Shown here piece after piece: positions 8,549-62,368 of a DNA stretch of 64,000 nt. Where the stretch lies: positions 372,001-436,000 of the forward strand of contig NZ_JMCB01000003.1 in NCBI RefSeq assembly GCF_000737315.1, read 5' to 3'. The stretch is from Hyalangium minutum (GTDB lineage: Bacteria > Myxococcota > Myxococcia > Myxococcales > Myxococcaceae). The position numbers and the translations under genes are program-made. Position 1 is the stretch's first letter; every line of letters starts with the position of its first letter. Below the pieces are notes generated by a model, which was given only the letters and a program-made list of their open reading frames with translations, had not been told where the DNA came from and did not search any database.

Positions 8549-8613
8549 TCTAGGGGGCCGGCCGAGCCGCACCGTGAAAATGAGCGCGGGCGGCACACGA
8601 CACAGCCCCGCGC

Positions 8614-8639
8614 TGGCACAAGGCACAGCTCGCTGTGCC
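8614..8639. promoter_or_regulatory. Palindromic GGCACAGC-N2-GCTGTGCC element, copy 1
   Basis: TGGCACAAGGCACAGCTCGCTGTGCC upstream of the bEBP gene; near-identical copy at 11998-12023. Confidence 0.6.
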
Positions 8640-8700
8640 AGGGTCTGTGCCTGCGGGCACCGACGAAGTGTCCTGAGAGAACACTCGTGAATACATCTGT

Positions 8701-43995: not shown

Positions 43996-44172
43996 CTACA
44001 ACGCGAGCGGAGCTAGAAGCAGCGCACCTGAACCGCCCGTCGCGACCACGAAAGCAACACCCGCGACGACAACGACGGTCCCGATGGCCACCTCGGTCTT
44101 ATGCTCTCTGAGCCAAGTGAGCGCCCTTTCGATGTTTGAGAACTCAAGGCGCTTCTTATCCTTTTCAACTCC
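43996..44172 (-). pseudogene. C-terminal remnant of a small myxobacterial membrane/toxin-like protein
   Basis: Manual translation: GVEKDKKRLEFSNIERALTWLREHKTEVAIGTVVVVAGVAFVVATGGSGALLLAPLAL*. No ATG before an upstream in-frame TGA at 44278-44280. Confidence 0.55.
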
Positions 44173-44602
44173 GAGCTGTACGTCATCTCCCAGATCGTCG
44201 AGAGCACCACCTCCTCGACGGATTCCTCCTCCAGTTCGTGGTCCTCCAGCTCCTCGGACTCGTCCTGGTCCTCGTCCTCAGAGTCCTCCTGGCCCTCGTC
44301 GAGCTCCGACTCCAGCTCCAGCTCGTCCTCGGACAGCTCGGGAGGCGGCGGCTCCGACTGGTAGCGCTCCGGGCTCCGAGGCTCGAGTCGCTGCCTCCTT
44401 CCGAGCCGCGGCTGAGGGCGTCCGTATGGACTGGAGCTTTGAGGGCTGCACCCGCGCACGTGTCTCGACAGTGACGCACCTTGGGAGCCGCTGCGTTCGA
44501 CAGGCGGCGACACCCTCGGAGATCCCGAAAAACCCGGCCGGCTCAATCTCCACCGAAGAACCGGTCGGCAGGCGCATGCCCGGAAGCGGAAGGAGATGCG
44601 AC

Positions 44603-46912
44603 ATGGGGTACGGACGCGGCAGTCACGAGCCTACAGGTGACGCAAGTTCTCGGCGAAAGCGGATCTTTGCAGCTCTGGTGGCGCTGGCCTTGGGAGGCGC
44701 ATGTAACACGGCGGGCTCGGACGAGGATGCGCGAGCCCGGCGCGAGGGGAACCTGGGCGACGAGGTGTGCGAGGTTCCCCCCTACACGCCTCACTTCGAG
44801 CCCGCGCTGCAGTGGGCGTGGACGGGCAGCCCCGTCCTCCCCGAGTACAACCAGGTGATGATGACGCCGGCCGTCGCCGACGTGAACCAGGACGGCACGC
44901 CCGACATCATCTTCAGCTCCTTCCGGGACATCCCGAACGATGACTTCGACTGGCGCGAGGGCGTGCTGCGCGCCATCAGCGGCAACGACGGGCACGACCT
45001 GTGGACCGTCACGGATCCGGCCTACCGCATCAAGGCTGCGGCCAGCATCGCGGTGGGCGACATCGACAATGACGGCAAGGTGGAGATCTGCGGCATCCCG
45101 ACGGATGGCCGCGGCATCATCTGCTACGAGAACGACGGCACCTTCAAGTTCCGCACGGCACCGGACGCGTTCGATTACAACGAGTGGGGCGGGCCTTCGC
45201 TGGCGGACCTCGACGGTGATGGCACCGTGGAGATCCTCGACGGCAATCGGGTGTACAGCAACACGGGCGCGCTGAAGTGGGTGGGCTCGGATGGCATGGG
45301 CGGCGCGCAGTACACCGGCCCGGTATCCTTCGCGGCAGACATCGATGGGGATGGCATCCAGGAACTTGTCAACGGCCGCGCCATTTACCGGGCCGATGGC
45401 ACCCTCAAGTGCGCCAACACGAACATCCCGCAGGGGCTCGCGGCGGTGGGCAACTTCGACGGTGACACGAAGGGCGAGATCGTCATCTCGGGCTACGGCA
45501 AGGTGAGCCTGTTGGATGATGACTGCTCGTTGGAGTGGAGCGTGAACATCCCGGGCGGCTGCGTGAACGGCTGCGGCGGCGCACCGACGCTGGCGGATGT
45601 GGACAACGATGGCCTGCCGGAGATCGGCGTGGCGGGCGAGAACTCCTTCACCGTCTTCGAGACGGACGGCAGCGTGAAGTGGACGAGCCCCATTCAGGAC
45701 TGGAGCTCGGGCAAGGCGGGCGCGACGGCGTTCGACTTCGAGGACGACGGCCACATCGAGTTCGTCTTCGCGGACGAGGTGTCGCTGCGCATCTACAACG
45801 GTGCCACCGGTGCCATCCGCTGGCAGACGCGGCACAGTTCGGGGACGACGCACGAGAACCCGGTCATCGCGGACGTGGATGGCGACCTGGCCGCGGAGCT
45901 GGTGGTGGCCACCAACGACCTGGCGTATCCGCCGTACCACGGCATCCGCGTGTACCACGACACGCAGGAGGGCTGGGCGCGCACGCGGCCGATCTGGAAC
46001 CAGCACGCCTACTCGGTCACGAACGTCAACGACAACGGCACCATCCCGGCGCATCCGGGGAAGCACTGGCAGTTGCCGAAGCTCAACACCTTCCGCGCCA
46101 ACGTGGCGGGCTACCTGAACGAGTGCCTGCCGCCGCCTCCTCCTCCTCCCCCGCCCCCGCCCCCGCCTCCTCCTCCCCCGCCGCCTGAGAACGAGCAGCC
46201 CGTGGCTGTTTGCAAGAACGTCACTGTCATCGCGGATGCGCAGTGCCAGGGCAGCGCCAGCGTGGACAACGGCAGCCATGATCCGGACCACCAGCCTGGG
46301 CCGTTCACCGTCTCCGAGTCGCCCACCGGTCCGTTCGGCCGGGGTACGCACAACGTGACGCTGACGGCCACCGATGGGGAGGACACGGCGCAGTGCGTGG
46401 GCCAGGTCACTGTGGTGGATGAGACGGATCCTGCGGTGAGCTGCCCTGCTCCGATCACGGTCCAGACCTGCTCGCCGGCGGGGAAGCAAGTCTCCTTCGC
46501 GGCGTCGGCTACGGACAACTGCGGCCCGGCGCAGGTCACCTGCACGCGCGCGTCTGGGTCTACCTTCCCGGTGGGCCAGACGGCGGTGAGCTGCGCGGCG
46601 GTGGACGGTTCGGAGAACAGCGCCTCGTGTGGCTTCTCCGTGACGGTCGAGGGCGACGAGACGCCGCCCTCCATCACCTGCCCCATCGCGGTCAACGCGT
46701 CGATCAGCCTGGGACAGATCTCCGCGCTCGTGCAGTTCACGGTGTCGGCCAATGACACCTGTGGCCCGGCGCAGGTCACCTGCAGCCATCCGCCCGGCTC
46801 GCTCTTCATCCCGGGGCTGACGCCCGTGACGTGCACGGCTCGGGATGCCTCGGGCAACACGGCCTCATGCAACTTCGGGATCTACGTGAGCCTGGACCTC
46901 TCCCTGCCGTAG
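44603..46912 (+). CDS. Lipoprotein: FG-GAP/VCBS propeller + poly-Pro linker + HYR domains
   Basis: AGGAG RBS before ATG 44603; lipobox LGGAC; repeats homologous to 32137-34761; C-terminal HYR-like units (CPAPITV...ATDNCG...FPVGQTAVSC). Confidence 0.85.
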   Translation: MGYGRGSHEPTGDASSRRKRIFAALVALALGGACNTAGSDEDARARREGNLGDEVCEVPPYTPHFEPALQWAWTGSPVLPEYNQVMMTPAVADVNQDGTPDIIFSSFRDIPNDDFDWREGVLRAISGNDGHDLWTVTDPAYRIKAAASIAVGDIDNDGKVEICGIPTDGRGIICYENDGTFKFRTAPDAFDYNEWGGPSLADLDGDGTVEILDGNRVYSNTGALKWVGSDGMGGAQYTGPVSFAADIDGDGIQELVNGRAIYRADGTLKCANTNIPQGLAAVGNFDGDTKGEIVISGYGKVSLLDDDCSLEWSVNIPGGCVNGCGGAPTLADVDNDGLPEIGVAGENSFTVFETDGSVKWTSPIQDWSSGKAGATAFDFEDDGHIEFVFADEVSLRIYNGATGAIRWQTRHSSGTTHENPVIADVDGDLAAELVVATNDLAYPPYHGIRVYHDTQEGWARTRPIWNQHAYSVTNVNDNGTIPAHPGKHWQLPKLNTFRANVAGYLNECLPPPPPPPPPPPPPPPPPPPENEQPVAVCKNVTVIADAQCQGSASVDNGSHDPDHQPGPFTVSESPTGPFGRGTHNVTLTATDGEDTAQCVGQVTVVDETDPAVSCPAPITVQTCSPAGKQVSFAASATDNCGPAQVTCTRASGSTFPVGQTAVSCAAVDGSENSASCGFSVTVEGDETPPSITCPIAVNASISLGQISALVQFTVSANDTCGPAQVTCSHPPGSLFIPGLTPVTCTARDASGNTASCNFGIYVSLDLSLP
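46130..46186 (+). repeat. Poly-proline tract (19 codons)
   Basis: Uninterrupted CCN codons between ECL and ENEQ. Confidence 0.85.
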
Positions 46913-47257: not shown

Positions 47258-47405
47258 CCCGATCCTTCATGGTGCGTCGCCACAACTTTGCCACCTTCTT
47301 GAACAGCGCCTCTGTCGCGGGGTCGTCCACAACCCCGTCGCAGAAGGGGCACGGAGTGGCGTGAGGCTATCCCAGAGCGGGAGTGTTGCTGAGGAGCAGT
47401 CTCAT
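47241..47405 (-). pseudogene. Small CxxC protein with in-frame TAG
   Basis: MRLLLSNTPALG*PHATPCPFCDGVVDDPATEALFKKVAKLWRRTMKDRDVDDD*. ATG overlaps the kinase TGA; internal TAG at 47367-47369. Confidence 0.5.
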
Positions 47406-48901
47406 GGCGTTCCTGAGGTGGGCTGAGGGGACTGGTCGTAGGAGGCCACGAAGCACGCCCCCTGGTAGTCGAACATCCGCTCGCCGCACGGAGGCTCCTG
47501 GTCCTTGAAGGGCCCCATCCAGCAACCACCCACAATCTCTCTTTCGATGCGCGGAACACATGGCGGACGACGCTGTCCAGGGAAGGGTTTGGAGGGCATC
47601 GGCCGCCCAAGAGAAAGCAGCGTGGGCACCACCGCCTTGGGAACATCCTGGACGTTCGTCAGCGCCTCATCCCCCACTCCTGCATCTGGCGCGAACTGGG
47701 CGATCTCCTCCGGCGTCGCGAGCCAGGGAACTGGCTGAGGAGTGGATGGAGTGTCTTGGTGCGTGGGGGAAGAGGCTTTGAGAAACGGGAGCAGCACGAG
47801 CGCCACCACGAGGCCGCCAATCATGGACGCGCTGGCCCAGGTGAACCACACGGGAACTGTATGACGTGAGGGCCGAGGTTCCTCCTTAGTCGCAGGGGCG
47901 GGCTGGCGTGAGGCGATCGGTCCTGGGCTGGGCGAGTCTTCGCTCAAGGGCTCGGAGCTGTACGGTGGGGGTTCGGAGCTGAACCTGTCGCCGGCCTCCG
48001 TCGGCATGGCGCTCGGAGTGGGGACAATGGTCCTGTCCAGCTCGCTATTCTCCGCCTGTGCCAGCAGCGCACACTCCCGCGCCAGTTGCTCCGCTGAGCC
48101 CCGTGCTCTCCGGTTCTCGGAGAGCAGCCGAAGGATGATCGCCTCCAGTTCCGGGCAGACCGTGGCCAGCGCTGACGGAGCAGGCACCTCGAGCTGGTCC
48201 ATGGGCTCTCCACCATCCGTGAGAGGCGGTAGATACTTGCCCGTCACCAGCCGATAGAGCGCCACGCCGAGGGAATAGAGATCATCCGAGACGCTGGACT
48301 GCCAGCGGGCCTCCATGTCCATGCGGAAGCAATAGGAGAAGCGCCGTTGCTCCGGAGAGCGATAGGCCGTCGTGCCCGGAGGTGCAGGGGTGTCCGTGAG
48401 TGGCTCCGCGCCAGCGAACCAACCCGAGCCCCAGTCCAGAAGGACGGCCCGGCCTTCCGCAGTGACACGGATGTTGCCTCCTTTTATATCCCGGTGGATG
48501 GCGCCGCGAGCATGGGCCGTGGCCAGGGCATCCGCGAGCTGGGCTGTGACTTTCAGCACATCCCGGTTGGAGCGCTGCCGCTCCTGGAACCAGTCGTACA
48601 GACTTCGGCCTCGCACTGCCTCCATGACCAGGTAGGGGTACTGGCAGTCGTCCGACCCCGTCCACAGGCCCGTGTCCTCGAAGCGAGGGATGCTCGGATG
48701 CGGGCAGCGCTGGAGTAACTCGGCCTCTCGCTCGAAGCGAGCATCGTTGGGCATCTTCGCCGTCTTGAGCGCCACGGGAGGGGACTCAGGGGCTTCGGAA
48801 CGACGCGCCAGGAACACCACGCCAAAGCTCCCCGAGTCCATGCGCTCAAGAATGAGCCAGGAGCCCACGGTGGAGCCGACAGCGGGGACTTCTCGGGCCA
48901 T
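47402..48901 (-). CDS. Ser/Thr protein kinase (DWG subtype) with TM and C-terminal Cys-containing domain
   Basis: GSFGVVF, VALK, HRDIKGGN, LDWGSG, YRSPEQ, DDLYSLG; TM; PGQRRPPC...GGCW...CF tail. Confidence 0.88.
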   Translation of the reverse strand: MAREVPAVGSTVGSWLILERMDSGSFGVVFLARRSEAPESPPVALKTAKMPNDARFEREAELLQRCPHPSIPRFEDTGLWTGSDDCQYPYLVMEAVRGRSLYDWFQERQRSNRDVLKVTAQLADALATAHARGAIHRDIKGGNIRVTAEGRAVLLDWGSGWFAGAEPLTDTPAPPGTTAYRSPEQRRFSYCFRMDMEARWQSSVSDDLYSLGVALYRLVTGKYLPPLTDGGEPMDQLEVPAPSALATVCPELEAIILRLLSENRRARGSAEQLARECALLAQAENSELDRTIVPTPSAMPTEAGDRFSSEPPPYSSEPLSEDSPSPGPIASRQPAPATKEEPRPSRHTVPVWFTWASASMIGGLVVALVLLPFLKASSPTHQDTPSTPQPVPWLATPEEIAQFAPDAGVGDEALTNVQDVPKAVVPTLLSLGRPMPSKPFPGQRRPPCVPRIEREIVGGCWMGPFKDQEPPCGERMFDYQGACFVASYDQSPQPTSGTP

Positions 48902-49063: not shown

Positions 49064-50866
49064 ATGCGTCTCATCTCCCGCCTTGGGGCGGTCGTGCTGT
49101 GCCTCCTGCTTCTCCCCCTGCTCTCCGCCCGTGCGGAGGGCTCAGAGCCCAAGCGCGTCGTCGCCGTCCTCTACTTCGACAACAACACCGGGGACTCCTC
49201 GCTCAACGTCCTGCAGAAGGGCTTCGCGGACATGATGGTGACGGACCTGTCCGCCGTCGAGCAGCTCCAGCTCGTCGAGCGCGAGAAGCTCCAGGCGATC
49301 ATCGATGAGCAGAAGCTCCAGCGCAGCAAGTACTTCGATGCAAAGACCGCGGTGAAGCTCGGCAAGCTCGTTGGCGCCCAGTACGCCGTGTCCGGCTCCT
49401 TTCAAGCCATGGAGCCGCAGCTGCGCATCGATATCAAGATGTTCGATCTCCAGACCGGCAATGTCCTCGTCACCGGCCAGGTCGTCGGCCTCAAGAACAA
49501 GCTCTTTGAACTCCAGCAGCAGCTGGTGACCCGCTTCGTCACCGGCCTCGCGCTCAAGCTCCCCGGCCCTCCCCGCCTCAAGAGCCGTACCCCCGACGTC
49601 GATACCCTGCTGAGCTACTCCAAGGGCATCGATCTCGTGGACCAGGGCAAGCTCGAAGAAGCCCGCGTGCAGCTCGCCGCCGTGGTTAGCAAGGCTCCCA
49701 CCTTCCTGCTCGCGCGCGAGCGCCATGAGCAGCTCCTCGCCCGGCTGAAGGCCTCGGAGGCGAAGCGGGGGGAGGTGCTCTCCGACGTCAGCGAAGCGCT
49801 CGGACGAAGCGCCGAGGAGTTCCTCCGCTCCACCCCGGCTGAGGGCCTCGATGAAAAAGGCTCCCTCATGCGCCTGGGCTACCGATCGGTCCGGTTGCAG
49901 TACCTGCTGCGCCAGCTCAAGCCGCACCTGGGCACTGAGCACCCGAATGTCATCCTGCCCGGCCACGAGGCCCAGGTCCTCGCCCTGCTGCGGCTCTGGC
50001 ACGAGCAAGGCATCGCCTACGTCCAGGAGAACCGCGAGCACTTCCGCCGCTTCCACAAGGTCATCGAGGGGGCCCCCTACCTCTCGTCCATGAGCCTGAC
50101 GCTCCAACCCGAGGACGAGGAGCGCCTGCGCCAGGCAAAGTATGGCTCCCTCGCCTACGAGGACGACGCGCCCGTCTCCGTGGCGGAGTTTCTCCTCATG
50201 GGCCGGTACCGGACCAGCTCCGAGTCCTTCCAGATGGCTCCCACGCTCGCGGACCAGGATCCCTCCGTTCTCAAGGAGGGCTTTCAGTTGCTGGACGAGG
50301 CCCTCCAGGAGGCCGAGGCCACCATTCCGCGGTTGCAGGAAGCCCGCGCCCGTCAGGTTCTGGAGCTGTATGGAGACGCCCTCATGCTTCGAGGCCATGT
50401 GGAAGAGGCGGTCGCCAAGTGGCAGCTGTTCCTCGATCGCTTCCCGTCCGCGAGGGCCTTCCCGTGGATCAGCAACAAGATCAAGACAGCGCTGGGCGTG
50501 GGCCCCAACCTCCGCGAGAACGCGGGCACGCAATACAACGTGGCCCTGGCTTCGTGCGACATGCCCGCCGCCCGCGAGGGCTACCACCACGAGCTGAACC
50601 GGCGCCTGCAGACCCAGGGCTACAAGGCCGCTCGCGCCATGTTCGAAGAGCTGGACGCGAAGTGCAGTGGCGCGAAGGACGCCAAGTTCGTCATCCGTGG
50701 CGTCCTCGTCTCGACCGCCTTGTCTGCCGGGCGCGCGGGAGACTGCGCCACCTTTCACTCGCTCTCCCCGCGCTTCTTGGAGCTGGGCGGCAGCAAGGGC
50801 GATCTCGCGGGGTACCTGAAGAACTACGTGCCCCACTGCCTCCCTGCCCCGGCCACGAGCCCCTGA
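49064..50866 (+). CDS. Exported CsgG/FlgO-like (TolB_N-like) domain protein with TPR-like extension
   Basis: Signal peptide; VAVLYFDN...KGFADMMVTDLS...LVEREKLQAIIDEQKL...KLGKLVGAQYAVSGS...LRID...TG; helical C-terminal region with Cys pairs. Confidence 0.75.
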   Translation: MRLISRLGAVVLCLLLLPLLSARAEGSEPKRVVAVLYFDNNTGDSSLNVLQKGFADMMVTDLSAVEQLQLVEREKLQAIIDEQKLQRSKYFDAKTAVKLGKLVGAQYAVSGSFQAMEPQLRIDIKMFDLQTGNVLVTGQVVGLKNKLFELQQQLVTRFVTGLALKLPGPPRLKSRTPDVDTLLSYSKGIDLVDQGKLEEARVQLAAVVSKAPTFLLARERHEQLLARLKASEAKRGEVLSDVSEALGRSAEEFLRSTPAEGLDEKGSLMRLGYRSVRLQYLLRQLKPHLGTEHPNVILPGHEAQVLALLRLWHEQGIAYVQENREHFRRFHKVIEGAPYLSSMSLTLQPEDEERLRQAKYGSLAYEDDAPVSVAEFLLMGRYRTSSESFQMAPTLADQDPSVLKEGFQLLDEALQEAEATIPRLQEARARQVLELYGDALMLRGHVEEAVAKWQLFLDRFPSARAFPWISNKIKTALGVGPNLRENAGTQYNVALASCDMPAAREGYHHELNRRLQTQGYKAARAMFEELDAKCSGAKDAKFVIRGVLVSTALSAGRAGDCATFHSLSPRFLELGGSKGDLAGYLKNYVPHCLPAPATSP

Positions 50867-50870
50867 GCCC

Positions 50871-53177
50871 TCAGCGCCGGCGCCAGCTGAGCAGCCGCGC
50901 CGCCGCCACCGTGCCGAACACGAGCACCGTGAAGGCCGCCGTGTACCCGAGGAAGACGATCCACCCCGTTGTCGTCCCCGGGATGCCCACCGAGGGGCTG
51001 AGATCCTGGAACTGCGCTCCCGAGAAGAAGCCACACGCCAGGCTCACCGGCAGGAAGACGAACACCAGCAAGCCCACCATCCGGTCGAACTGGTCCCGCT
51101 TGTACTGGTCCAGCTCCGAGGCCTGATCCCTCATCGCCGCCACGGTCTCCTGCATGCCGTGGAGCGAGTGCCACGCCAGGTAGCGCGCGTTGAGATCCGG
51201 ATCCTCGCCGATACGTGAGTGCCACAGCGAGTTGGTGAACAGCATCACGTCCGAGCGCACGCTGCGCGCCGGCCGCAGGCTCTGCCAACGCGAGGTGCGG
51301 TAGCGCTGCTCCACCTCGGCCATCCTCCGGCTGATCTCGAAGGCCGAGTAGCGCTGTCCGGTGGTGAGCAGGAACAGGAGGAAGTCCTGATCGCACCGCA
51401 GCGGCGCGCCCTCCTCCGCCTCGAGCAGAATCTCCACCCGGGCCCCTCCCGTGGGGGTGAGCCAGTGCTCCGTCTCTCCAGCCGCGTCCTTCAGCACCCG
51501 GCGGCTCTCCGCCGCGGCCTCCGAGGGCAGCCGCTCCAGCGTGGGCGCCGTCCCCGAGGCCAGCGCGTGAAAGAGTCCCTGCATGGAGCGCGAGTCATCC
51601 AGCATGGACGAGCGGCCTCGGGAGATCCGGTAGGCGCCGTAGACGAGCCACCGCTCCGGGCCCAGCGGCTCGAGCGAGGGCCTCAGCTCCTTCAGGGGTG
51701 TCAGCTCCCAGAGTGCCCGCCCCTCGGCGAGCGCCGCCTGTTCCTGGGCGAGCGCGTACAGCGAGATCTCCTCCTTCCGAGGCTGCTCGATCCACACCAC
51801 GACGAGCTGGTTCGGGTAGACGGAGACGTGCACGGTCTGCCCTTCGGAGGGCTGCTCGTAGTGCGCCACATCCGCCTCCGAGGAGCTCCCGAGGAAGGAC
51901 TGGGTGACGGCCGGGTGGAAGGTTCCCGCCTGCTCCGAGAAGTCACGGCGGCGGAAGCCTCGTGCCAGGAGTTCGGTGTGCGGCATTCCGCCCTTCCACA
52001 GGAAGGGCCGGGCAAAGACGGTGTGGGCCCGGAGGATGGGGACGTTGCGGCCCACGTTGTACCGACTCCAGAGCGCCTCCCACAGCGATCGGCGTGTCAG
52101 GCGTGTGCCCGCATACGGTGGGGCTACCAGCGTGGCTCGGCTCGTGGAGCTCGTGTAGCCATCCGTGTACCAGGGATCGGAGTAGTCGTTGGGCTGGTGC
52201 TCGAAGCGCTTGGGCCCTCGCGCCCGAGGGCCACCCTTCGGCAGCTGATCTCCCTCCAGCGTGTCCAGCCACTCGGCGAGGCCTGCCAGAGTGCCTGCGC
52301 GCTCGGGGGCCAGCGAGAGGGTGTGCCGGTAATAGGCCGTCTCCACGTGGGGGGCGTGGACGGCCATGAAGTCGAAGCCCTGCCCATAGTGTGTGTACTC
52401 CGTGTCGGAGCGGGCCAGGAGCTTGAGGACGGTGACGTCCTGGAACGACGAGAGGAAGAGTGCATCCACCCGGCGCACCGGGGCGTCCTTGGCCTCGGCC
52501 AGGGGGATGTCCAGCTGCACCCGCTGCGCGCGCGACAGCTCCGCCTTGTACAGCAGGCCGTCCGCCTTCAGGCGCCGGGTGACCGGCGGAGGCACGAGGG
52601 ACTCCGGGAGCCTCGTCAGCTCGGAGCGATCACGCACCACCGCCATCGCGGCGGCCAGCAGCTCGAGCACCGGACGGGCCGGCCGGCCCAGCTGCGAGGG
52701 CCAGAGGCGCAGCGCCGCGTAGAACACCGGCCCCAACGCCCGTTCGTACTCTCCGGCCAGCTCGGTCTGGCCCTGCTCCCACGCGCTGATGTACTCGCTG
52801 AAGGCCTCGGCGCCCTCGGGGAACTGGCCGTGGAGGATCCGGTAGATGGCGAGCAGCGCCGCCGTGGTCGCATCGAGGGTCGCCTCGTGGATGCGCAGCC
52901 GGATGGGCCCGGAGGAGCCCTCGGCGGCGAAGGCATCCAGCTCCGCTCCGGCCATCAGCACCGCGCCCGTGGACGCGTGCATCCCGCGACGCACCCACTG
53001 CGGCAGCTTCCACGACAGCATGCGCGGATGGGCAGGCAAGGACTCGCTTCGGGCGCCCACGCTGATGAACAGCTCTCTCGGGCCGGGCTCGGCCCCGGGG
53101 GCGGGTTTCTCGGTGCTCCACTCGACCTGATCTTCTCGGGACAGCAGCTCAACGCTCTGCCGGAACCTGGCATCCAT
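50871..53177 (-). CDS. Fusion of degenerate DHH/NrN-like domain and CorA-like two-TM domain
   Basis: 768 aa from ATG 53177. N-terminal IHEATLDATTAALL and YSDPWYTDG...VAPPYAGTRLT segments; C-terminal helical region (GQRYSAFEIS...FTNSLWHSRI...MRDQASELDQY) followed by two TMs with LPVSLACGFFSG. Confidence 0.6.
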   Translation of the reverse strand: MDARFRQSVELLSREDQVEWSTEKPAPGAEPGPRELFISVGARSESLPAHPRMLSWKLPQWVRRGMHASTGAVLMAGAELDAFAAEGSSGPIRLRIHEATLDATTAALLAIYRILHGQFPEGAEAFSEYISAWEQGQTELAGEYERALGPVFYAALRLWPSQLGRPARPVLELLAAAMAVVRDRSELTRLPESLVPPPVTRRLKADGLLYKAELSRAQRVQLDIPLAEAKDAPVRRVDALFLSSFQDVTVLKLLARSDTEYTHYGQGFDFMAVHAPHVETAYYRHTLSLAPERAGTLAGLAEWLDTLEGDQLPKGGPRARGPKRFEHQPNDYSDPWYTDGYTSSTSRATLVAPPYAGTRLTRRSLWEALWSRYNVGRNVPILRAHTVFARPFLWKGGMPHTELLARGFRRRDFSEQAGTFHPAVTQSFLGSSSEADVAHYEQPSEGQTVHVSVYPNQLVVVWIEQPRKEEISLYALAQEQAALAEGRALWELTPLKELRPSLEPLGPERWLVYGAYRISRGRSSMLDDSRSMQGLFHALASGTAPTLERLPSEAAAESRRVLKDAAGETEHWLTPTGGARVEILLEAEEGAPLRCDQDFLLFLLTTGQRYSAFEISRRMAEVEQRYRTSRWQSLRPARSVRSDVMLFTNSLWHSRIGEDPDLNARYLAWHSLHGMQETVAAMRDQASELDQYKRDQFDRMVGLLVFVFLPVSLACGFFSGAQFQDLSPSVGIPGTTTGWIVFLGYTAAFTVLVFGTVAAARLLSWRRR

Positions 53178-53220
53178 CGGGTTGCAGCATACAGGTGCCT
53201 CCGTGCCAGAATCCTGATTC

Positions 53221-53952
53221 GTGCGTTCCTTTTCTTCGCTTCCGGTGCGTTTTCTGTGTCTGTTCCTCGGGCTGCTGGCACTGCCCGCCCCCGCCGCCGA
53301 GCAGCCCACCGTCGCGGTCCTCTACTTCGGCTACGGCGGGAAGACGCCGGAGCTGGAGGTGCTCCGCAAGGGGCTGGCCCAGATGCTGATCTCGGATCTG
53401 TCGGGCTTCGGGACGGTGAAGCTGGTGGAGCGGGAGCGGCTCCAGGAGATTCTGGACGAGCTGGAGCTGGGCCAGTCCTCCAAGTTCGATGCGGACACCG
53501 TGGCCAAGCTCGGCAAGCTGCTGGGCGCCCAGTATTTGGTGATGGGCGACTACTTCGATCTGCTGAACAGCCTCCGCGTGGATGCCCGAGTCATCGAGGT
53601 GAAGACGGGCCAGATTCTCCGCTCTCTGGGAGCCCGGGGCAGCGCGGAAGACTTCTTCACGCTCGAACAGAAGCTGTCGCAGGACATCAACAAGGTGCTC
53701 GAGGAGCTCGTCGCCAAGGCCACCGCTCCGTCCAAGGAGCCCGCTCCCGGGCCCTCTGGCGGTTCCCATGGGTCCACGCCCTCTCGCATGGCGCGGCGGC
53801 TCACCACGAAGACGGCGCTGCGCTATTCCAAAGCCCTGGACGCGAAGGATCGCAAGGACGTGGAGACCGCGAAGAAGGAGCTGAAGGCGGTGCTCGAGGA
53901 GCAGCCGGACTTCGTGCTCGCCTCCGCGGATCTGGCCCGCCTGATGAAGTGA
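53221..53952 (+). CDS. Exported CsgG/FlgO-like domain protein (short paralogue)
   Basis: GTG start, signal peptide, VAVLYFGY...KGLAQMLISDLS...LVERERLQEILDELEL...KLGKLLGAQYLVMG...LRVDARVIEVKTG. Confidence 0.78.
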   Translation: MRSFSSLPVRFLCLFLGLLALPAPAAEQPTVAVLYFGYGGKTPELEVLRKGLAQMLISDLSGFGTVKLVERERLQEILDELELGQSSKFDADTVAKLGKLLGAQYLVMGDYFDLLNSLRVDARVIEVKTGQILRSLGARGSAEDFFTLEQKLSQDINKVLEELVAKATAPSKEPAPGPSGGSHGSTPSRMARRLTTKTALRYSKALDAKDRKDVETAKKELKAVLEEQPDFVLASADLARLMK

Positions 53953-53959
53953 GTCCGCC

Positions 53960-55228
53960 CTACTTGCAGAAGAACTCGGCCTGACGGGATCCCTTCTGCC
54001 GGGCGCGGCACCACGCGGCCTTGGCGCGATCCCGATCCGCCACGGTCTCCTCCTGCTTTCCAGCGGACTGGGAGGCCTGAGCCCTCGCGGCGTAGGCATG
54101 CCCCAGGAAGAGGGAGACCTCCGGGATCTCCGGGGCCAGCTCCGTCGCGCGCTCCAGGAACTGCACGGCCTCCTCCACGCGCTGCTTCTGCAGGGCGAGG
54201 AGCCCCAGGTTGAAGCGCGGCTTCCAGAACCGGGCGTCCAGCTCCGCGGCCCGCTGGTAGTGCTCCGCGCTCTCCAGCCAGTCATTGGCGAGCGCCGCCA
54301 TCCTCCCGGCGAGGTTCTCGGCCGCCGCGAAGTCCTTGCACTCGAGCGCCGCGCTCATGGCCGCGGCATCCGGGTGGCCCGTCAGGAAGCTCGCCTTGGC
54401 CACGAAGAAGGAACCCTCCGGGCCCCAGCGCTGGCTCTGGGCACGAAGCGTCTCGAGGGCTGCGTTGGCCTCCTGGGGACGTGACGCCTCGGGGAGCTGA
54501 TCCGAGAGCTTGGGCACCACGGCCACCAGGGCCTCGACCGCGGAGGCATCCTTTTCCTTGCAGGCGGCCGGGACTGGAGGCTCGCCGCTCTCCGTCACGA
54601 GCACGTCCAGCTGCTTCCGGAGCTGAGCGGCTCTCTCGGAGGCATGGAGCGAGAAGAGCCCCAGCGCCACGACGAGGATCGCGAGGAGCGCTCCACCCAC
54701 GAGCGCCAGCCGCCGGTTGTTGGCAGGGCTGGCCTTCGGGGGAGCCGCCGTGGAAGCCACCGGCTCGGAGGGGGCGGCGGGCACGGGGCTCTCGGGCTCC
54801 TGGGCGTAGCGCTCCTTATACCAGGACAGGATCGCGACCAGGGAGTTGAGGGCCGTGAGCGCATCCTCGAGGCCCACCTTCACACCGGCCTCGTGGAGGC
54901 CGCCCGCGTGATCGTGCGAGCTGAGGTTCCCCCAGGCCTGCACCGTGCCCATGTGCGCCAGGATGTTGGTGGGAATGACGCTGGCGTGGGCCTGCTGCCG
55001 GAACTTGGAGAGCAGCTCGTCCAGCATCGCCTTGCCCGGCGTGTGCTTGAGCTCGGTGGTGGCCAGCGAGCGGAGGATCATCTCCACCACCAGCCGCGCG
55101 TTCTGCAGCGCCCCCTTGTAGTCCTGGTGCCGGGCCCGGGTGGTGAGCGCCGTGAGATCGTCGCGGGCCCTCCCGAAGTACGGCGTGAGCTGCTCGATGC
55201 GCTTGAGCAGTGGCTCCAGCTCGGTCAT
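53960..55228 (-). CDS. DUF4145 (HEPN-like) domain + TM + TPR protein
   Basis: N-terminal ARLVVEMIL...LDELL...IPTNI...WGNLSSH...ALNSLVAILSWY; single TM LALVGGALLAILVVALGLFSL; C-terminal TPRs (HYQRAAELD...RFNLGLL...FLERATELAP). Confidence 0.7.
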   Translation of the reverse strand: MTELEPLLKRIEQLTPYFGRARDDLTALTTRARHQDYKGALQNARLVVEMILRSLATTELKHTPGKAMLDELLSKFRQQAHASVIPTNILAHMGTVQAWGNLSSHDHAGGLHEAGVKVGLEDALTALNSLVAILSWYKERYAQEPESPVPAAPSEPVASTAAPPKASPANNRRLALVGGALLAILVVALGLFSLHASERAAQLRKQLDVLVTESGEPPVPAACKEKDASAVEALVAVVPKLSDQLPEASRPQEANAALETLRAQSQRWGPEGSFFVAKASFLTGHPDAAAMSAALECKDFAAAENLAGRMAALANDWLESAEHYQRAAELDARFWKPRFNLGLLALQKQRVEEAVQFLERATELAPEIPEVSLFLGHAYAARAQASQSAGKQEETVADRDRAKAAWCRARQKGSRQAEFFCK

Positions 55229-55265: not shown

Positions 55266-56753
55266 CTACTTCGAGCCCGGCTTGGGCGGAGCGTTCGGCT
55301 TGCGATCGTCCTTCGTGCCGGGGGTGGCGGTGGGGCCCTCGGGCGGAGGCCCGGGATCCTTGGCCCGGGGATCGCGCTTGTCCTCGGGCTGCGCCTGGGC
55401 CTGCTGGGCCTTGTACTGCGCATTGAGCTCCGCGAACTTCCCCTGGCGCTCCAGGGCCCACAGATCCTCGTCCGTCACATAGGGCCGGTTGAGGATCTTC
55501 CGCGCCGCGAGGATCTTCGCCTTCAGCAGCGGGTCCGCCACCGGGTTGTTGTTCTCCTTGGTGGGCTTGGCCGGCGGGCGCATCACCGAGAACGCGCCCC
55601 GCGCGGGCCGGCCCTCGGAGTCCTTGCCCTCCACGTAGTACTCCAGGGAGAAGACGTCCGGATCCTTATGAGTGTCGAGCTTCACGTCGAACTCGATGCC
55701 CTTACCCGGCGGGACGATGCTGGTGCCCAGCAGCGACGAGGGATCCACCACCTGCTCCGGGGACGGCGCTGTGGGGGCCATCAGGTGCCGGAATCTCACC
55801 GTGTTGTGGACGAACACGGGCCGGTCCTGCGTGTGGAACATCCGGACCTTCTGCCGCACCACCCCATCGCTGCCCAGCTCCGGGAAGCGCGGCGTGAGCT
55901 GCACCAGCAGCGTCACCACGCCCTTGGTGGCCAGATCCTCGTAGGCCGGGTTGAGCAACTGCAGCGAGGTGCGCCCCACCACCGGCTCTTCCCCGCTGCT
56001 GCCATGCACCTTCACCTGGATCAGGAGGTTCGAGTACATCGCCTCCTGCTTGCGGCCCTCGTAGCTGTGGGTGACGTGCGGCACGTCCGTGGTGATCGTC
56101 TCCCCGTCCCCGAAGGTCCACTCGTACGAGCGTGGCTTGAACGGCACCACTGAGACGTTCCCGGGCGGAGGGTTCTCCACGAGCTTCACGTCGAAGTCGT
56201 ACTCGCCCCAGGTGTTTGCCCGGAGGTTGAAGGTGATCAGCGCCATGCGCGGGGGCTTGCACGGCTTCACCGTGAAGGTAGGCACCTCCACCCGCGTGGT
56301 GACGTTGTCCTTGCCGAAGACCAGCACCTCCAGCTTCGGCTGCTCGCCGTCATCCGCGATCCACGAGCGTACCGGTGCCCGCTGCCCCTGCCGCCCACCG
56401 ATCGTGTAGTGCAGGAAGGCATCCGATCCATCCGGGGTGTGGGCCCGGACAGTGATCAGGTTCTCCTCGCCCTCGCACACCTCGGGCTTCTCCACGGTGA
56501 TCTCGTCGATCACCGGAGCGGCCGGGTCCGCCTTCGCCTCGGCGGGCGGAGGCGGTGCCTCGGGGGCGGTGGGCTCGGGCTTCGGAGCAGGAGCCGGGGG
56601 GGCCTCCGCCACCTTCGGACCGGGCATGGCCGGCGGCGGCGGAGTGGCCACGGCGGGAGGGGTGTCCCCCGGCCAGAGCCAGACAACCAGCGCCACCACC
56701 ACGCACGCCCCGACCGCGGCGATTCCCGCCTTCCGTCTCCTGCTCTCGCTCAC
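55266..56753 (-). CDS. Membrane-anchored PKD-domain protein
   Basis: N-terminal TM, Pro-rich linker, YEWTFGDGETITTDVPHVTHSY PKD signature. Confidence 0.75.
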   Translation of the reverse strand: MSESRRRKAGIAAVGACVVVALVVWLWPGDTPPAVATPPPPAMPGPKVAEAPPAPAPKPEPTAPEAPPPPAEAKADPAAPVIDEITVEKPEVCEGEENLITVRAHTPDGSDAFLHYTIGGRQGQRAPVRSWIADDGEQPKLEVLVFGKDNVTTRVEVPTFTVKPCKPPRMALITFNLRANTWGEYDFDVKLVENPPPGNVSVVPFKPRSYEWTFGDGETITTDVPHVTHSYEGRKQEAMYSNLLIQVKVHGSSGEEPVVGRTSLQLLNPAYEDLATKGVVTLLVQLTPRFPELGSDGVVRQKVRMFHTQDRPVFVHNTVRFRHLMAPTAPSPEQVVDPSSLLGTSIVPPGKGIEFDVKLDTHKDPDVFSLEYYVEGKDSEGRPARGAFSVMRPPAKPTKENNNPVADPLLKAKILAARKILNRPYVTDEDLWALERQGKFAELNAQYKAQQAQAQPEDKRDPRAKDPGPPPEGPTATPGTKDDRKPNAPPKPGSK

Positions 56754-56763
56754 TGCTCCGTCC

Positions 56764-57843
56764 TTAGAACCAGCACCCGTAAACGTTGCCGCCGGAGTTC
56801 CACTGGATCGTGTTGGTGGTGTCGTACGCCCACACGCTCACGCCTGTGCCGGTGTACGGGTGGCCGCTCCAGCCACCGAGCCGATCCGGGCTGATGGACC
56901 GCGACACCGTGGCCCCATTGTTGGAGATGTTGTTCCAGACGTTGGCGTCGTCCGTGTCGCACCGGCCCGCGGCCATACAGTTGCGCACTTGGCGGCCCGC
57001 GTCGTCACAGATGTTCTCGAAGCAGGTGATGGTGGAGCCCACGCTGGACCAGAAGCCCAGGCCCGTGTTGCACTCGTTCTGCACCGAGTTGTAGAGCGAG
57101 TTGCCCGCCGTCTGCAGCTTGCCGTGATCGTACGTGTACGCGTCGACCACGCCGAGGCCCGCCTTGTACTGCGCGTGGGCGAGCATCGTGGAGCACACCA
57201 TGCCGTTGTTCCAGCCGGCGCCGCCATAGTTCACCGACTCGAGGTCGCGGTACTGATAGAGCACGTAGTTCAGCGGCGCGCCGTTGGGGCCCAGGTAGCG
57301 CTGCAGCGTCACGCCGCCGTTCTGCTTGGACGTGGCCGCCACCGTCGGCATGGAGCTGAGGAGCCAGTTGGAGACGCTCTCCCCGTTGGTGTTGTAGCCC
57401 GCGGAGTTGCGGCTGCGCTGATAGCCGAGGTACTGGAGGCTGCCACTGCCGCCGTAGAGGTACTGATAGATGGCGCCCTGGTTGATGCGGCCCGCGCCCG
57501 GATAGCCCGAGGTCAGCTCGCCGGCCTTCAGCGGCGTGCTGCAGTAGGTAGGCCAGCCGTTGGTGCCCGGCGTGTACATCGTCTCGTGCGTCACATCGCC
57601 GCCGGGGCCGTGAGAGAACATCGAGTGCGTCCGGTACTCGCCTACCGCATCCAGCACCGCGGCCACTGGGCCACCGCCACCGCCACGGCTGAGCACGAGC
57701 GCGCCGTTGGGGGCGCTCCAGCCAGCGGCGGTGCTGCCGCACGCGGCGTCGCCGGTACCAGAGGAGCCAGCGAAGGCAACAGGCGCGGTCATCGCAGCAG
57801 CCACGAGGGCCGCGTTGCGGAAGGTCTTCACTGCATTCGACAT
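56764..57843 (-). CDS. Secreted protein, probable permuted papain-like (YiiX/NlpC-P60 type) fold
   Basis: Start ATG 57843 with signal peptide; His (RTHSM) well upstream of Cys (MVCSTMLA), the order seen in permuted NlpC/P60 enzymes; several Cys in the C-terminal half. Confidence 0.55.
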   Translation of the reverse strand: MSNAVKTFRNAALVAAAMTAPVAFAGSSGTGDAACGSTAAGWSAPNGALVLSRGGGGGPVAAVLDAVGEYRTHSMFSHGPGGDVTHETMYTPGTNGWPTYCSTPLKAGELTSGYPGAGRINQGAIYQYLYGGSGSLQYLGYQRSRNSAGYNTNGESVSNWLLSSMPTVAATSKQNGGVTLQRYLGPNGAPLNYVLYQYRDLESVNYGGAGWNNGMVCSTMLAHAQYKAGLGVVDAYTYDHGKLQTAGNSLYNSVQNECNTGLGFWSSVGSTITCFENICDDAGRQVRNCMAAGRCDTDDANVWNNISNNGATVSRSISPDRLGGWSGHPYTGTGVSVWAYDTTNTIQWNSGGNVYGCWF

Positions 57844-58014
57844 AGGGTCTTCCTTCACGGGACAGGGGAAAGCCGGGCACTGGAAGAAAATCGAAGAACA
57901 CGGATTGTGTCCCCTCTGAAGACTCCCTGGCAAGGAGGCGCTCAGCGCCGCGTTGAGTCAACCTGTCCCCTCTGTCCGTTATCACGGACGCTTGTCTGTG
58001 TTTCATCCAACCAG

Positions 58015-58383: not shown

Positions 58384-58971
58384 ATGATCTCTCGCACGGA
58401 ACGCGTCGCCCCCCGTCTCCCGCTGGCCTCTACCCCTGAGGTGAGCACCCCGAACCGGCCCACGGTGGCCGAGGCTCCCAAGCCCTTCGCGCGTGACACG
58501 TTCGAGGGCGCATCCGCGGTGCAGCGCACGGCGCAGGTGGCCGCGGCGCCCGCCGGGGATCACGGCAAGCTGATGAGCGAGTACCTCACGGGCGCGCGTC
58601 CTCCTCCGGCGGACTTCAAGCAGGTGATGGGCTACGAGCCCTACCAGATCCAGACGAAGCACGGGCCTCGGATGCAGGATCCGTTCGGTGATGCCTCGGC
58701 GCCTGGGAAGATCGGCCCGGACAAGGAGTTCGACCCGGCGGCCAAGACGCACGACTACGGGTACGATCTGCTCCGGTACTACGCGAAGAAGGGCACGCCG
58801 CTGGCGCCCGAGGCGCGCAAGGCCGCCGATGCGCAGTTCCGCAAGGACCTGTTCGACTACGCCAACGATCAGAAGGGCTTCGGGGACAAGTGGAAGTTCA
58901 AGACGTGGGCACAGATCTACGCCACGGCGGTGGAGCTGAACTCGCTCCGCCAGGGCTACGGGCCTCCGTGA
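58384..58971 (+). CDS. Prokaryotic phospholipase A2-like protein
   Basis: FDPAAKTHDYGYDLL...RKAADAQFRKDL resembles the prokaryotic PLA2 His-Asp motif (xCxxHDxGY...D..F..D). Confidence 0.6.
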   Translation: MISRTERVAPRLPLASTPEVSTPNRPTVAEAPKPFARDTFEGASAVQRTAQVAAAPAGDHGKLMSEYLTGARPPPADFKQVMGYEPYQIQTKHGPRMQDPFGDASAPGKIGPDKEFDPAAKTHDYGYDLLRYYAKKGTPLAPEARKAADAQFRKDLFDYANDQKGFGDKWKFKTWAQIYATAVELNSLRQGYGPP

Positions 58972-60952: not shown

Positions 60953-62368
60953 ATGCGGTCCCTTCTTCTCACCCTCCTCCTGCCGGGCGTCGCAGCCGCG
61001 GGCGAGTTCCATCGCCTCTACGCGGAGGAGGCCTCGGCCAGCAGCTTCCTCAAGAGCAACTGGAACAAGTACGAGGAGAACTACCACCCGAGCTACGTGC
61101 TCGATGACGATCCGAAGACGGCCTGGGTCGAGGGTGCCGAGGGCGACGGGATCGGCGAGTCGCTGACGATCCCCGTGTCGGATCTCCGCTCGGCGCGAGC
61201 CATTCGCCTGGTCATCTTCAATGGCTACCAGAAGTCTTCCAACCTCCTGAGCGCCAACGCCGCCGCCAAGCAGCTCACCGTCACCGTGGCGGGGCCCGGC
61301 GGCCAGCCGTCCGCGAAGAAGCAGCTCACCCTGGAGCGGAAGATGGGGCCTCAGTCCTTCGACATCCCCGTCACGGCGGGTGTTGCCGAGGTGGTGCTCA
61401 CCCTCGACAGTGTCCACCCCGGCTCGAAGTACCGCGACACCTGCATCTCCGATGTGCAGGTGTTCGTGGACAGCGACGTGCCCTACAACCCCACCGTCGA
61501 GAAGGGCAAGCGGGAGCGCATGCTCCAGTGGAAGAAGGGCCGCGTGGCCACGGCGAAGTACTTCGCCTCCCTTCCGAAGACTTACCCCTACGCCTCCACG
61601 CAGTTCGAGCGGAAGTGGGAGAACGAGTTCCTCTCGAGTCGCTTCTCCAAGGTCGAGGACAAGGACGACGACGGAGAGTACGAAACGAAGGTGCTCTCGG
61701 AGGAATACGTTCCGCTCCTGAAGCAGGTCCAGCAAGGGAAGATCCAGGGGCCCCTGTCCGCGGAGGAGCAGGCGCTGTTGAAGGAGCTCGAGGCGCTCTC
61801 GCGAGCGGGTCCCCCCAAGACTGGGAAGTGGTACTCGGTGGTCAAGCAGAAGCCCACCGTCCAGCCCGAGGGCCTTTATTTCTCCCGGTTGCTCGAGCCC
61901 CTGCTCCACCCGGCGGACATGACGCTCTTCGAAGCCCAGGGACAGGGCTCACTCACGCCGGAACCGGTCCCGGGCATGGAGTACGCCTCGGGCTCCGAGG
62001 AGGAGGTCCTCTCCAACTTGCTGCTGCTCGAGGGCTCGGCCACGGACCCGAAGAAGGTGTTCTTCACCTACAAGCAGATCGTCAGCGAGCGCACCACGAG
62101 CACCACCACCCTGCAAGGCGTGGCCCTCATTTCGGAGGGGAAGCTCCAGCGGCTGGTGACCTTTGAAACGTCCCAGCATGAGATCGGTGAGGGCACGAGC
62201 GAGGAAGTGGCCGTCAGTGTGCTGGTCCCTACTTACACCGGGGGCAAGGTGTCGAAGCTGGTGACCACCCGCCTCGAGGATGCCGAGCCCGTGTATGACA
62301 TCTCGGAGGACACCCCCGGCGTCGAGCTGAAGGTGACGACACTGGTGCCTCCCCTCTCCGGTTCATGA
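60953..62368 (+). CDS. Exported protein with N-terminal discoidin/NADase-type glycan-binding-like domain
   Basis: Signal peptide; ASASSFL...YHPSYVLDDDPKTAWVEG..GDGIGESL...IFNGYQKS...DTCISDV. Confidence 0.7.
   Translation: MRSLLLTLLLPGVAAAGEFHRLYAEEASASSFLKSNWNKYEENYHPSYVLDDDPKTAWVEGAEGDGIGESLTIPVSDLRSARAIRLVIFNGYQKSSNLLSANAAAKQLTVTVAGPGGQPSAKKQLTLERKMGPQSFDIPVTAGVAEVVLTLDSVHPGSKYRDTCISDVQVFVDSDVPYNPTVEKGKRERMLQWKKGRVATAKYFASLPKTYPYASTQFERKWENEFLSSRFSKVEDKDDDGEYETKVLSEEYVPLLKQVQQGKIQGPLSAEEQALLKELEALSRAGPPKTGKWYSVVKQKPTVQPEGLYFSRLLEPLLHPADMTLFEAQGQGSLTPEPVPGMEYASGSEEEVLSNLLLLEGSATDPKKVFFTYKQIVSERTTSTTTLQGVALISEGKLQRLVTFETSQHEIGEGTSEEVAVSVLVPTYTGGKVSKLVTTRLEDAEPVYDISEDTPGVELKVTTLVPPLSGS

Follow-up and report, generated by a model that had tools for sequence, protein, structure and literature searches.

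CorA-family membrane proteins that are paired with or fused to the DHH nuclease NrN are proven effectors of type III CRISPR systems, and the fused form is known from Aliarcobacter butzleri (Chi et al. 2023, PMC10600005). The DUF4145 domain has been placed in the HEPN superfamily (PMC3710099), with the Rx4-6H motif conserved in only ~80% of its members (PMC3710099), and membrane-tethered DUF4145 HEPN proteins have been proposed to be stimulus-dependent RNases (Anantharaman et al. 2013, PMC3710099). Here we analyze a 64,000-nucleotide stretch of the Hyalangium minutum genome (contig NZ_JMCB01000003.1, positions 372,001 to 436,000; hereafter “the window,” to which the coordinates below refer) in which four genes, g1 to g4, form a compact cassette at positions 49064-55228 and bring relatives of these proteins together with exported, CadC-like proteins. 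The cassette is a new combination of known parts: an earlier note on this DNA knew of no described system with this composition, and we likewise found none in the literature. Our tentative reading, which we put somewhat short of an even chance, is that g3 and g1 would be the sensors and g4 the relay of a lineage-specific envelope sensing module that is loosely coupled to g2, a ligand-gated channel of DHH-derived and CorA-like make-up.

The genes alternate in strand: g1 (49064-50866, +; 600 amino acids (aa), exported), g2 (50871-53177, -; 768 aa, inner membrane), g3 (53221-53952, +; 243 aa, exported) and g4 (53960-55228, -; 422 aa, a bitopic inner-membrane protein). They are separated by 4 bp (50867-50870), 43 bp (53178-53220) and 7 bp (53953-53959). 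Coding status was judged by codon-position GC (GC3 and GC2, the GC content at third and second codon positions) in this genome of 68% GC, the window itself lying at 64-72%; signal peptides and transmembrane (TM) helices were assigned by hydropathy. All four open reading frames (ORFs) combine a GC3 of 0.87-0.92 (0.887, 0.888, 0.873 and 0.915 for g1 to g4) with low GC2, which is the coding pattern, and the ORFs overlapping them on the opposite strand show the shadow pattern; g1 to g4 are real genes. ORF coordinates and codon-position GC thus confirm the gene order, strands and gaps first noted for the cassette, and the signal peptides and TM helices match the original description of two exported and two inner-membrane proteins with cytoplasmic domains. 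The g2 frame is open to 53309, and its start was placed at the ATG at 53177 (MDARF...), in agreement with the N-termini of its homologues; for g3, a GTG at 53245 is an alternative start. No NCBIfam family exceeded its cut-off for any of the four proteins. A scan of the two convergent junctions, g1/g2 and g3/g4, found no terminator-like hairpin. The 3' ends of the convergent pairs must overlap or read into one another, and antisense interference is possible.

The C-terminal half of g2 consists of a CorA-like alpha/beta domain, a stalk helix and two TM helices at residues 700-718 and 740-758, which is the CorA/MIT architecture of a cytoplasmic alpha/beta domain, a long stalk and two C-terminal TM segments. 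The end of the first TM helix carries a CorA-like FLP...G..G..F segment, and at its periplasmic end, where CorA has its GMN motif, g2 reads FLPVSLACGFFSGAQF. Across 68 g2 homologues (114 full-length ones were found), F717-F718-S719-G720-x-Q722-F723 is invariant, so that S-G-A-Q stands in the place of GMN. An AlphaFold2 model built from these 68 homologues (predicted local distance difference test score (pLDDT) 85, predicted template modeling score 0.79) places the alpha/beta domain at 380-590 and helices at 597-628 and 675-720. Searched with Foldseek against the PDB, the full model matched NrnA (4LS9, E=1.7e-3), PggH (7D62, E=2.4e-2, probability 0.89), PPX1 and family II pyrophosphatase, as well as CorA (4I0U and 8TMB, E = 7e-3 to 6e-2), all of these values being marginal. 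At the sequence level, the CorA-effector model of PADLOC matches residues 601-723 in the stalk and first TM helix (E=3.7e-4), and Pfam CorA (PF01544) matches 3 of 14 g2 homologues, at best with E=1.2e-3 and under the gathering score; the window protein itself has no match in Pfam or NCBIfam, and sequence searches against the PDB with the g2 profile, the g4 N-terminal domain and one remote g2-like protein returned nothing usable.

The N-terminal ~380 aa of g2 carry a series of motifs, H97-x-x-T100-x-D102, D238, D258 without a following His-His, and E305/E308, which are conserved at DHH-like spacings; their mapping onto the DHH motifs is inferred from these spacings. The putative motif I reads H97-E-A-T100-L-D102 in the window; all 118 remote homologues keep D102, and the canonical H-x-x-P-D-x-D is present in about half of the remote g2 superfamily. 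Pfam DHH falls on motif I in three remote members (P0160, at 8.4e-6, P0223 and P0166), in each case under the cut-off. By spacing, the putative motif III aspartate is D258, which is 96% conserved and is followed by T-E in the window. Since no conserved histidine follows D258 anywhere in the superfamily, the Asp-His-His of motif III is absent and we take its His-His to have been lost. Two points weigh against a DHH assignment, namely that the Foldseek E-values are marginal and that the isolated model of residues 1-386 (pLDDT 81) has no DHH match at all, its best E-value being 0.2. Because the isolated domain model lacks DHH matches, we treat the assignment as motif-level homology and not as a proven fold. 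The DHH-CorA label that g2 had been given is right at the level of homology but must be qualified by the loss of the motif III His-His.

Taken together, the evidence for the CorA-like and DHH-like nature of g2 is weaker but convergent. The protein shares with the CorA/MIT channels, exemplified by Thermotoga maritima CorA (4I0U, 8TMB), the alpha/beta domain, the long stalk, the two C-terminal TM helices and the FLP...G..G..F segment, but differs from them in having S-G-A-Q for GMN, a longer conserved periplasmic loop and an extra N-terminal domain of 380 aa, with sequence scores that stay below the Pfam threshold. Like g2, the CorA and NrN proteins of type III-B CRISPR systems, including the fused NrN-CorA, combine a DHH-type domain with a divergent CorA that is no classical Mg2+ channel (PMC10600005), and PggH, the closest match that has been reported for NrN (PMC10600005), likewise ranks among the top fold matches of g2. 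However, no CRISPR-Cas system or Cas10 lies near g2, its DHH-like domain lacks the His-His that NrN requires, its likeness to CRISPR CorA is limited to ~120 residues, and its partners are exported CadC-like proteins and a DUF4145-TM-TPR protein. From its motifs, we take the N-terminal domain to be DHH-derived, with a probable role in ligand binding or atypical hydrolysis. Most likely, g2 is a pentameric channel or pore, which we infer to be gated by a ligand that is bound or turned over at the DHH-like domain; it is probably not an Mg2+ importer. The parallel with the CRISPR NrN-CorA effectors would make ligand-gated membrane permeabilization a testable hypothesis for the DHH-derived/CorA-like family to which this protein belongs.

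Both exported proteins begin with a signal peptide followed by an alpha/beta domain of the CsgG-N/LpoB type. In g1 this domain (CsgG-N/LpoB/TolB-N-like, ~28-136) is followed by a TPR-like hairpin (~180-225) and a helical C-terminal part of ~370 aa with four conserved cysteines; in g3 it is followed by a linker and a C-terminal TPR-like hairpin, and family alignments show that the whole of g3 corresponds to the first ~230 aa of g1. Pfam matches are to CsgG (PF03783; 1.1e-14 over profile positions 7-103 of 210 for g1, 3.3e-16 over positions 33-96 of 210 for g3) and LpoB (1.6e-9 and 7e-6), along with weak TPR matches in g1 and TPR_Slam (5e-4) in g3. When the family profile of g3 and the g1 N-terminal part was compared with the PDB, CadC (3LY7-9) ranked first with a marginally significant E=2.6e-3, ahead of CsgG (0.11), LpoB (0.7) and FlgO (1.2), and the CadC match covers query positions 113-222, across the junction between the alpha/beta and helical parts. 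Both g3 and the N-terminal part of g1 have the CadC-type layout, a periplasmic alpha/beta subdomain and then a helical, TPR-like one. No barrel-forming hairpins of CsgG were found in g1 or g3, in which the domain ends after ~110 aa and gives way to helices, and neither protein has a lipobox: the signal peptides end in SARA/EG and APA/AE, and the sole cysteine lies inside the hydrophobic core after a leucine. Because only the first half of CsgG is matched and CadC leads the profile ranking, we conclude that g1 and g3 are not CsgG channels. They are predicted from sequence to be secreted proteins of a sensor or adaptor type, not outer-membrane beta-barrel channels, and more specifically Sec-exported, soluble periplasmic proteins with the sensor layout of CadC. 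The CsgG-like label first attached to them therefore stands for the matched CsgG-N module but not for the protein as a whole. Compared with E. coli CadC (3LY7-3LY9) and with the module common to TolB-N, LpoB, CsgG-N and FlgO, g3 and the g1 N-terminal part have the same alpha/beta module and helical repeats; unlike CadC, they are secreted on their own, with no TM helix joining them to a DNA-binding domain, and unlike LpoB and CsgG they lack the lipobox and, in the case of CsgG, the barrel-forming half as well.

The fourth protein, g4, has a cytoplasmic DUF4145 domain (1-140), a TM helix (174-192) and a periplasmic TPR domain with conserved cysteine, in which Pfam places TPR repeats at 314-385. 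The DUF4145 match (PF13643) scores 24.1 bits against a cut-off of 23.1, a narrow margin; a homologue from another locus (L021) scores 23.1 bits, and several g4 homologues carry PF13643 as precomputed annotation. Homologues of g4 number 213 and come from the same taxa as those of g2. Within the domain, the segment T-V-Q-A-W-G-N-L-S-x-H-D-H, which reads TVQAWGNLSSHDH in the window, is invariant, and no arginine lies within 8 residues upstream of the conserved histidine in any of 46 homologues, so the Rx4-6H dyad is missing. The HEPN-like effector proposed earlier thus keeps its DUF4145 domain but loses the catalytic arginine, and from the alignment this HEPN-fold domain is highly conserved and probably non-catalytic. 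Like the predicted membrane DUF4145 group (PMC3710099), g4 combines an inner-membrane tether for its cytoplasmic DUF4145 domain with an external putative sensor domain; members of that group, however, begin with an N-terminal TM segment bearing a WP signature, and g4 has the reverse order (DUF4145, TM, periplasmic TPR) and no catalytic arginine.

The 43 bp between the starts of g2 and g3 (53178-53220) appear to be a shared control region. On the g2 side, a -10-like TATGCT stops 9 nt short of the ATG, and on the opposite strand the g3 GTG is preceded at a distance of 8 nt by CAGAAT; the intergenic DNA is strongly conserved in Hyalangium and Archangium. The pattern TA[TAC][GA][GC]T, which was defined after inspection of the data, ends 6-20 nt before the g2 ATG at 51 of 58 loci, including those of the deep-branching clade and those with g2 alone, against a background of 0.2% per window scanned. 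On the g3 side, 25 of 43 loci have [TC]A[GC]AA[GAT] 5-11 nt before a g3 start, and in most of these the two starts are 35-47 bp apart. A scan of the region for a consensus sigma-70 promoter found none. We also considered a sigma-54 (-24/-12) promoter at the conserved intergenic TGGCAC, and rejected it because the GG-N10-GC register does not fit. Short as the spacer had seemed for two promoters, -10-like hexamers on both sides fit divergent promoters that overlap; such promoters would probably give leaderless or near-leaderless mRNAs, an arrangement that the hexamers suggest and do not prove.

To ask how constant the cassette is, one genome per species was scanned, which gave 64 loci with a g2 homologue, all of them from Archangiaceae/Myxococcaceae; the closest g2 homologues outside the window are Hyalangium proteins. 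Linkage was counted by tblastn and ORF clustering at the 55 loci that had 2.5 kb or more of sequence on each flank. All four genes are present at 33 of these 55 loci and g3 with g4 but without g1 at 11, so that g3 and g4 adjoin g2 at 44/55; g4 is the only partner at 1/55. When g1 is at the locus it is always accompanied by g3/g4 (33 of 33), and the combination of g1 without g3/g4 was seen at none of the 55. The neighborhood is specific to Archangiaceae and is kept together in most Archangiaceae carriers. It occurs in three flanking contexts that have no genes in common besides the cassette: a Hyalangium type, with genes g7, g6 and g5 and then the cassette; an Archangium/Vitiosangium type, also found in A. 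gephyra GCA_003387095.1, with deoxyhypusine synthase, OsmC, a 192-aa gene and then the cassette; and a deep clade in which g2 is ~50% identical. Across this deepest split the three immediate neighbors of g2 are kept and, kinase-only similarity aside, none of 11 other window genes tested is. In the deep clade g4 lies on the strand of g3; in the clade of the window it is inverted and still adjacent. Identity across the split is 64% for the DUF4145 domain of g4 and 60% for the stalk and TM part of g2, compared with 27% for the periplasmic part of g4 and 23-44% for the periplasmic parts overall, and such fast periplasmic evolution alongside conserved cytoplasmic and membrane parts fits what is expected of sensors. 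Every loss of g3/g4 is accompanied by the absence of g1, which lies on the far side of g2, and this argues that g1 depends on g3/g4.

Deep-clade loci add an operonic context. There, g3 and g4 lead a tight operon (gaps of -14 to 63 bp) that continues with an optional caspase-like peptidase with a signal peptide, a stand-alone 150-aa protein binding cyclic nucleoside monophosphates (cNMP), an exported 340-aa protein without assignment and a DedA/VTT protein; the caspase gene is present after g4 in only part of the clade (cluster 17, 11 loci). Last comes g1; a MiaB/RimO-like gene and one for a small exported protein stand before it, joined in part of the clade by genes for a trypsin-like lipoprotein and a TM-anchored caspase-like protein. 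This is an envelope-related context and supports an envelope reading of the g3-g4 pair. Genes of the g3-g4 and g1 types are operonic with exported caspase-like (C14) and trypsin-like peptidase genes at L021 (4343-9872), L029 (5847-9969), L072 (4432-14448) and L074 (1-12814).

Beyond these families, a profile search of 1.84 billion representatives returned 427 clusters of g2 relatives, 177 of them at E<=1e-10, from several phyla ranging from Myxococcota to Spirochaetota and Bacillota (e.g., Leptospiraceae and Evansella), all annotated as hypothetical. About half keep the N-terminal domain and the CorA-like end together, and in three members (P0166, P0207, P0223) the N-terminal domain is fused to a Ser/Thr kinase. 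A large, multi-phylum and unannotated DHH-derived/CorA-like family thus exists whatever becomes of the coupling proposed here. The neighbors of the remote genes vary: at one locus (L068, 3936-14996) the g2-like gene lies between PIN/MazE, an IS91-type transposase and a type IIG restriction-modification enzyme; at another (L069, 1-6452) it overlaps, and is translationally coupled to, a 1117-aa kinase gene; and at a third (L077, 1-9475) it follows genes for Tubulin_2, an 869-aa protein without assignment and a 1304-aa Peptidase_M90 protein.

In the reading we tentatively favor, the cassette would consist of two modules, g2 alone and g3 with g4 (plus g1). The g3 and g1 proteins would serve as periplasmic sensors or scaffolds that dock on the g4 TPR domain, and g4 would in turn pass the signal across the membrane through its DUF4145 domain. 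Where it is adjacent, g2 would be the likely target or co-regulated output of this relay, since a single compact, divergent control region is common to g2 and g3. The coupling of the g3/g4/g1 module to g2 is probably one of shared regulation and possibly one of contact, and a response to envelope state or stress appears more likely as the role of the whole than phage defence. If the modules cooperate, periplasmic events would control the gating of a CorA-type pore with no need of CRISPR or a cyclic-nucleotide synthase, and a catalytically dead HEPN fold would gain a role as a transmembrane adaptor.

A competing account is that g2 and the g3/g4/g1 genes are functionally unrelated and lie together by vertical descent within one family, in which case the finding would shrink to four better-annotated hypothetical genes; we consider this doubtful, though a serious competitor. 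Several observations count in its favor and against coupling. The linkage evidence comes from a single bacterial family with mostly vertical inheritance and so amounts to few independent observations. The parts separate in every way: g2 stands alone at 10/55 loci; at two loci (L072/L073) g4 and a 223-aa g3-like gene are flanked by genes for caspase-like and trypsin-like peptidases, and g2 is missing from the surrounding 8 kb; in H. versicolor the g1 orthologue is ~35 kb from g2, still beside the genes of the window's left flank; and g1-like genes stand alone at L080 and L081. Partnerless g2 is intact, keeps its own -10-like element, and has an unchanged periplasmic loop with no trace of the loss of its partners; the loop was tested for divergence after partner loss, and none was seen. 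The remote g2-like genes have other partners, with no match to family hidden Markov models of g1, g3 or g4 at six remote loci (L065-L070) and no g1/g3/g4-type domains listed in the gene tables of three more (L076-L078). The lone copies, which go back to several independent losses, occupy up to five positions on a neighbor-joining tree of g2, scattered among full Archangium cassettes, and one (L016) falls in the Hyalangium clade, where g2 directly adjoins a truncated g5 (299 aa, 60% coverage; ~7300-10000), g4 and g3 are gone and the g2 -10-like element is kept, which suggests a single deletion from inside g5 to the g2 promoter. Mere synteny, however, does not readily explain why the neighbors of g2 stayed when every other flanking gene was exchanged from one context to the next, why g4 was inverted yet remained at the locus, why g1 and g3/g4 are repeatedly absent together from opposite sides of g2, or why the divergent g3/g2 control region is conserved at mostly 35-47 bp. 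The expectation that the four genes would co-occur across genomes is accordingly borne out for most loci and contexts, but their separability goes part of the way toward the independent occurrence that had been named as its refutation.

Two further accounts assign the genes a definite but different role. The g3, g4 and g1 proteins might be regulators or scaffolds of periplasmic proteolysis by exported caspase- and trypsin-like peptidases; in the lineage of the window their genes would have moved away from those of the peptidases, and g2 would be a bystander. In the deep clade and at L072-L075, with or without g2, a caspase-like gene with a signal peptide directly follows g4, and immediately upstream of g1 or the g3-like gene are genes for a trypsin-like lipoprotein and a TM-anchored caspase-like protein, so these deep-branching operons may be a periplasmic proteolytic system, apparently undescribed. 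But the link is seen after g4 in only part of the deep clade, and no such peptidase adjoins the cassette in the Hyalangium or Archangium contexts; within the 64-kb window there is no VTT, cNMP-binding, caspase-like, trypsin-like or MiaB-like gene. As an explanation of the cassette we regard it as unlikely. Abortive infection, which the earlier note had put forward, would have periplasmic sensors detect an attack and a CorA-like pore (g2), a HEPN RNase (g4) or both kill or arrest the cell. It draws on the proven CorA and NrN effectors of type III CRISPR (PMC10600005), whose fusion the architecture of g2 parallels, on the proposal of stimulus-dependent RNases for membrane-tethered DUF4145 proteins (PMC3710099), and on the remote g2-like gene that lies among restriction-modification, toxin-antitoxin and transposase genes. 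Yet PADLOC-DB v2 yields only the weak CorA match for g2 and nothing below E=0.005 for g1, g3 and g4; there is no Cas protein, cyclase or other signal generator near the cassette, the flanks in the window are ordinary, and no signal of a defence island was seen at the locus. The family occupies a fixed chromosomal site and is passed on vertically, searches turned up no plasmid- or phage-borne relatives of g2, and both catalytic signatures are gone, the Rx4-6H arginine from all g4 homologues and the DHH His-His from g2. A defence role is therefore very unlikely on present evidence and stays conjecture, as does kin discrimination, for which no polymorphic-toxin or immunity features were seen. A bolder version of our own reading, in which the g2 proteins of the remote family are ligand-gated membrane effectors that in Archangiaceae are linked to the periplasm by CadC-like secreted sensors and a transmembrane adaptor with a non-catalytic HEPN fold, to give a new trans-envelope signalling or suicide system, seems to us quite improbable.

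Around the conserved core, two genes on the strand of g4 lie directly upstream of it and form a context block (55266-57933, -): g5 (55266-56753, -; GC3 0.91), which encodes a TM anchor, a Pro-rich linker and a weak PKD match, and g6 (56764 to ~57843, -; GC3 0.88), whose product is secreted, Cys-rich and without a Pfam match. Because the three genes share a strand and the gaps are only 10 bp (g6/g5) and 37 bp (g5/g4), g4 probably closes a g6-g5-g4 transcription unit in this genome. The g5-g6 pair is kept at the locus only in the Hyalangium-like clade (L001, L003-L005, L016). The next gene, g7 (58384-58971, +), has a weak match to prokaryotic phospholipase A2 (E=2.8e-4), and the g5-g6-g7 block is likewise kept only in that clade.

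The wider flanks in the window hold kinases, a 5'-nucleotidase, an FG-GAP/HYR protein, a LysR regulator, an aldo-keto reductase and cytochromes. Divergent from g1 and 162 bp upstream of it is the gene for a Ser/Thr kinase (47402-48901, -) that has a TM segment and an extracytoplasmic tail rich in cysteine; the kinase matches many of the PADLOC PD-T4-6 kinase models (best 2.6e-39) in what looks like generic kinase similarity. It was considered as a fifth component, since remote g2-like domains are fused or adjacent to kinases, and rejected, its apparent conservation at the loci being generic kinase similarity. Further out, the secreted FG-GAP/HYR protein (44084-46912, +) contains a run of ~20 prolines, and its first ~170 codons are low-complexity, Pro/Arg-rich and of lower GC3 (0.82), so that the true start is probably further downstream. 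On the other side, at 60953-63405 (+), two genes overlap by 4 bp: the first encodes a protein with an NAD-glycohydrolase translocation F5/8 type C domain (2.5e-21), the second a multi-haem MtrC/MtrF-like cytochrome.

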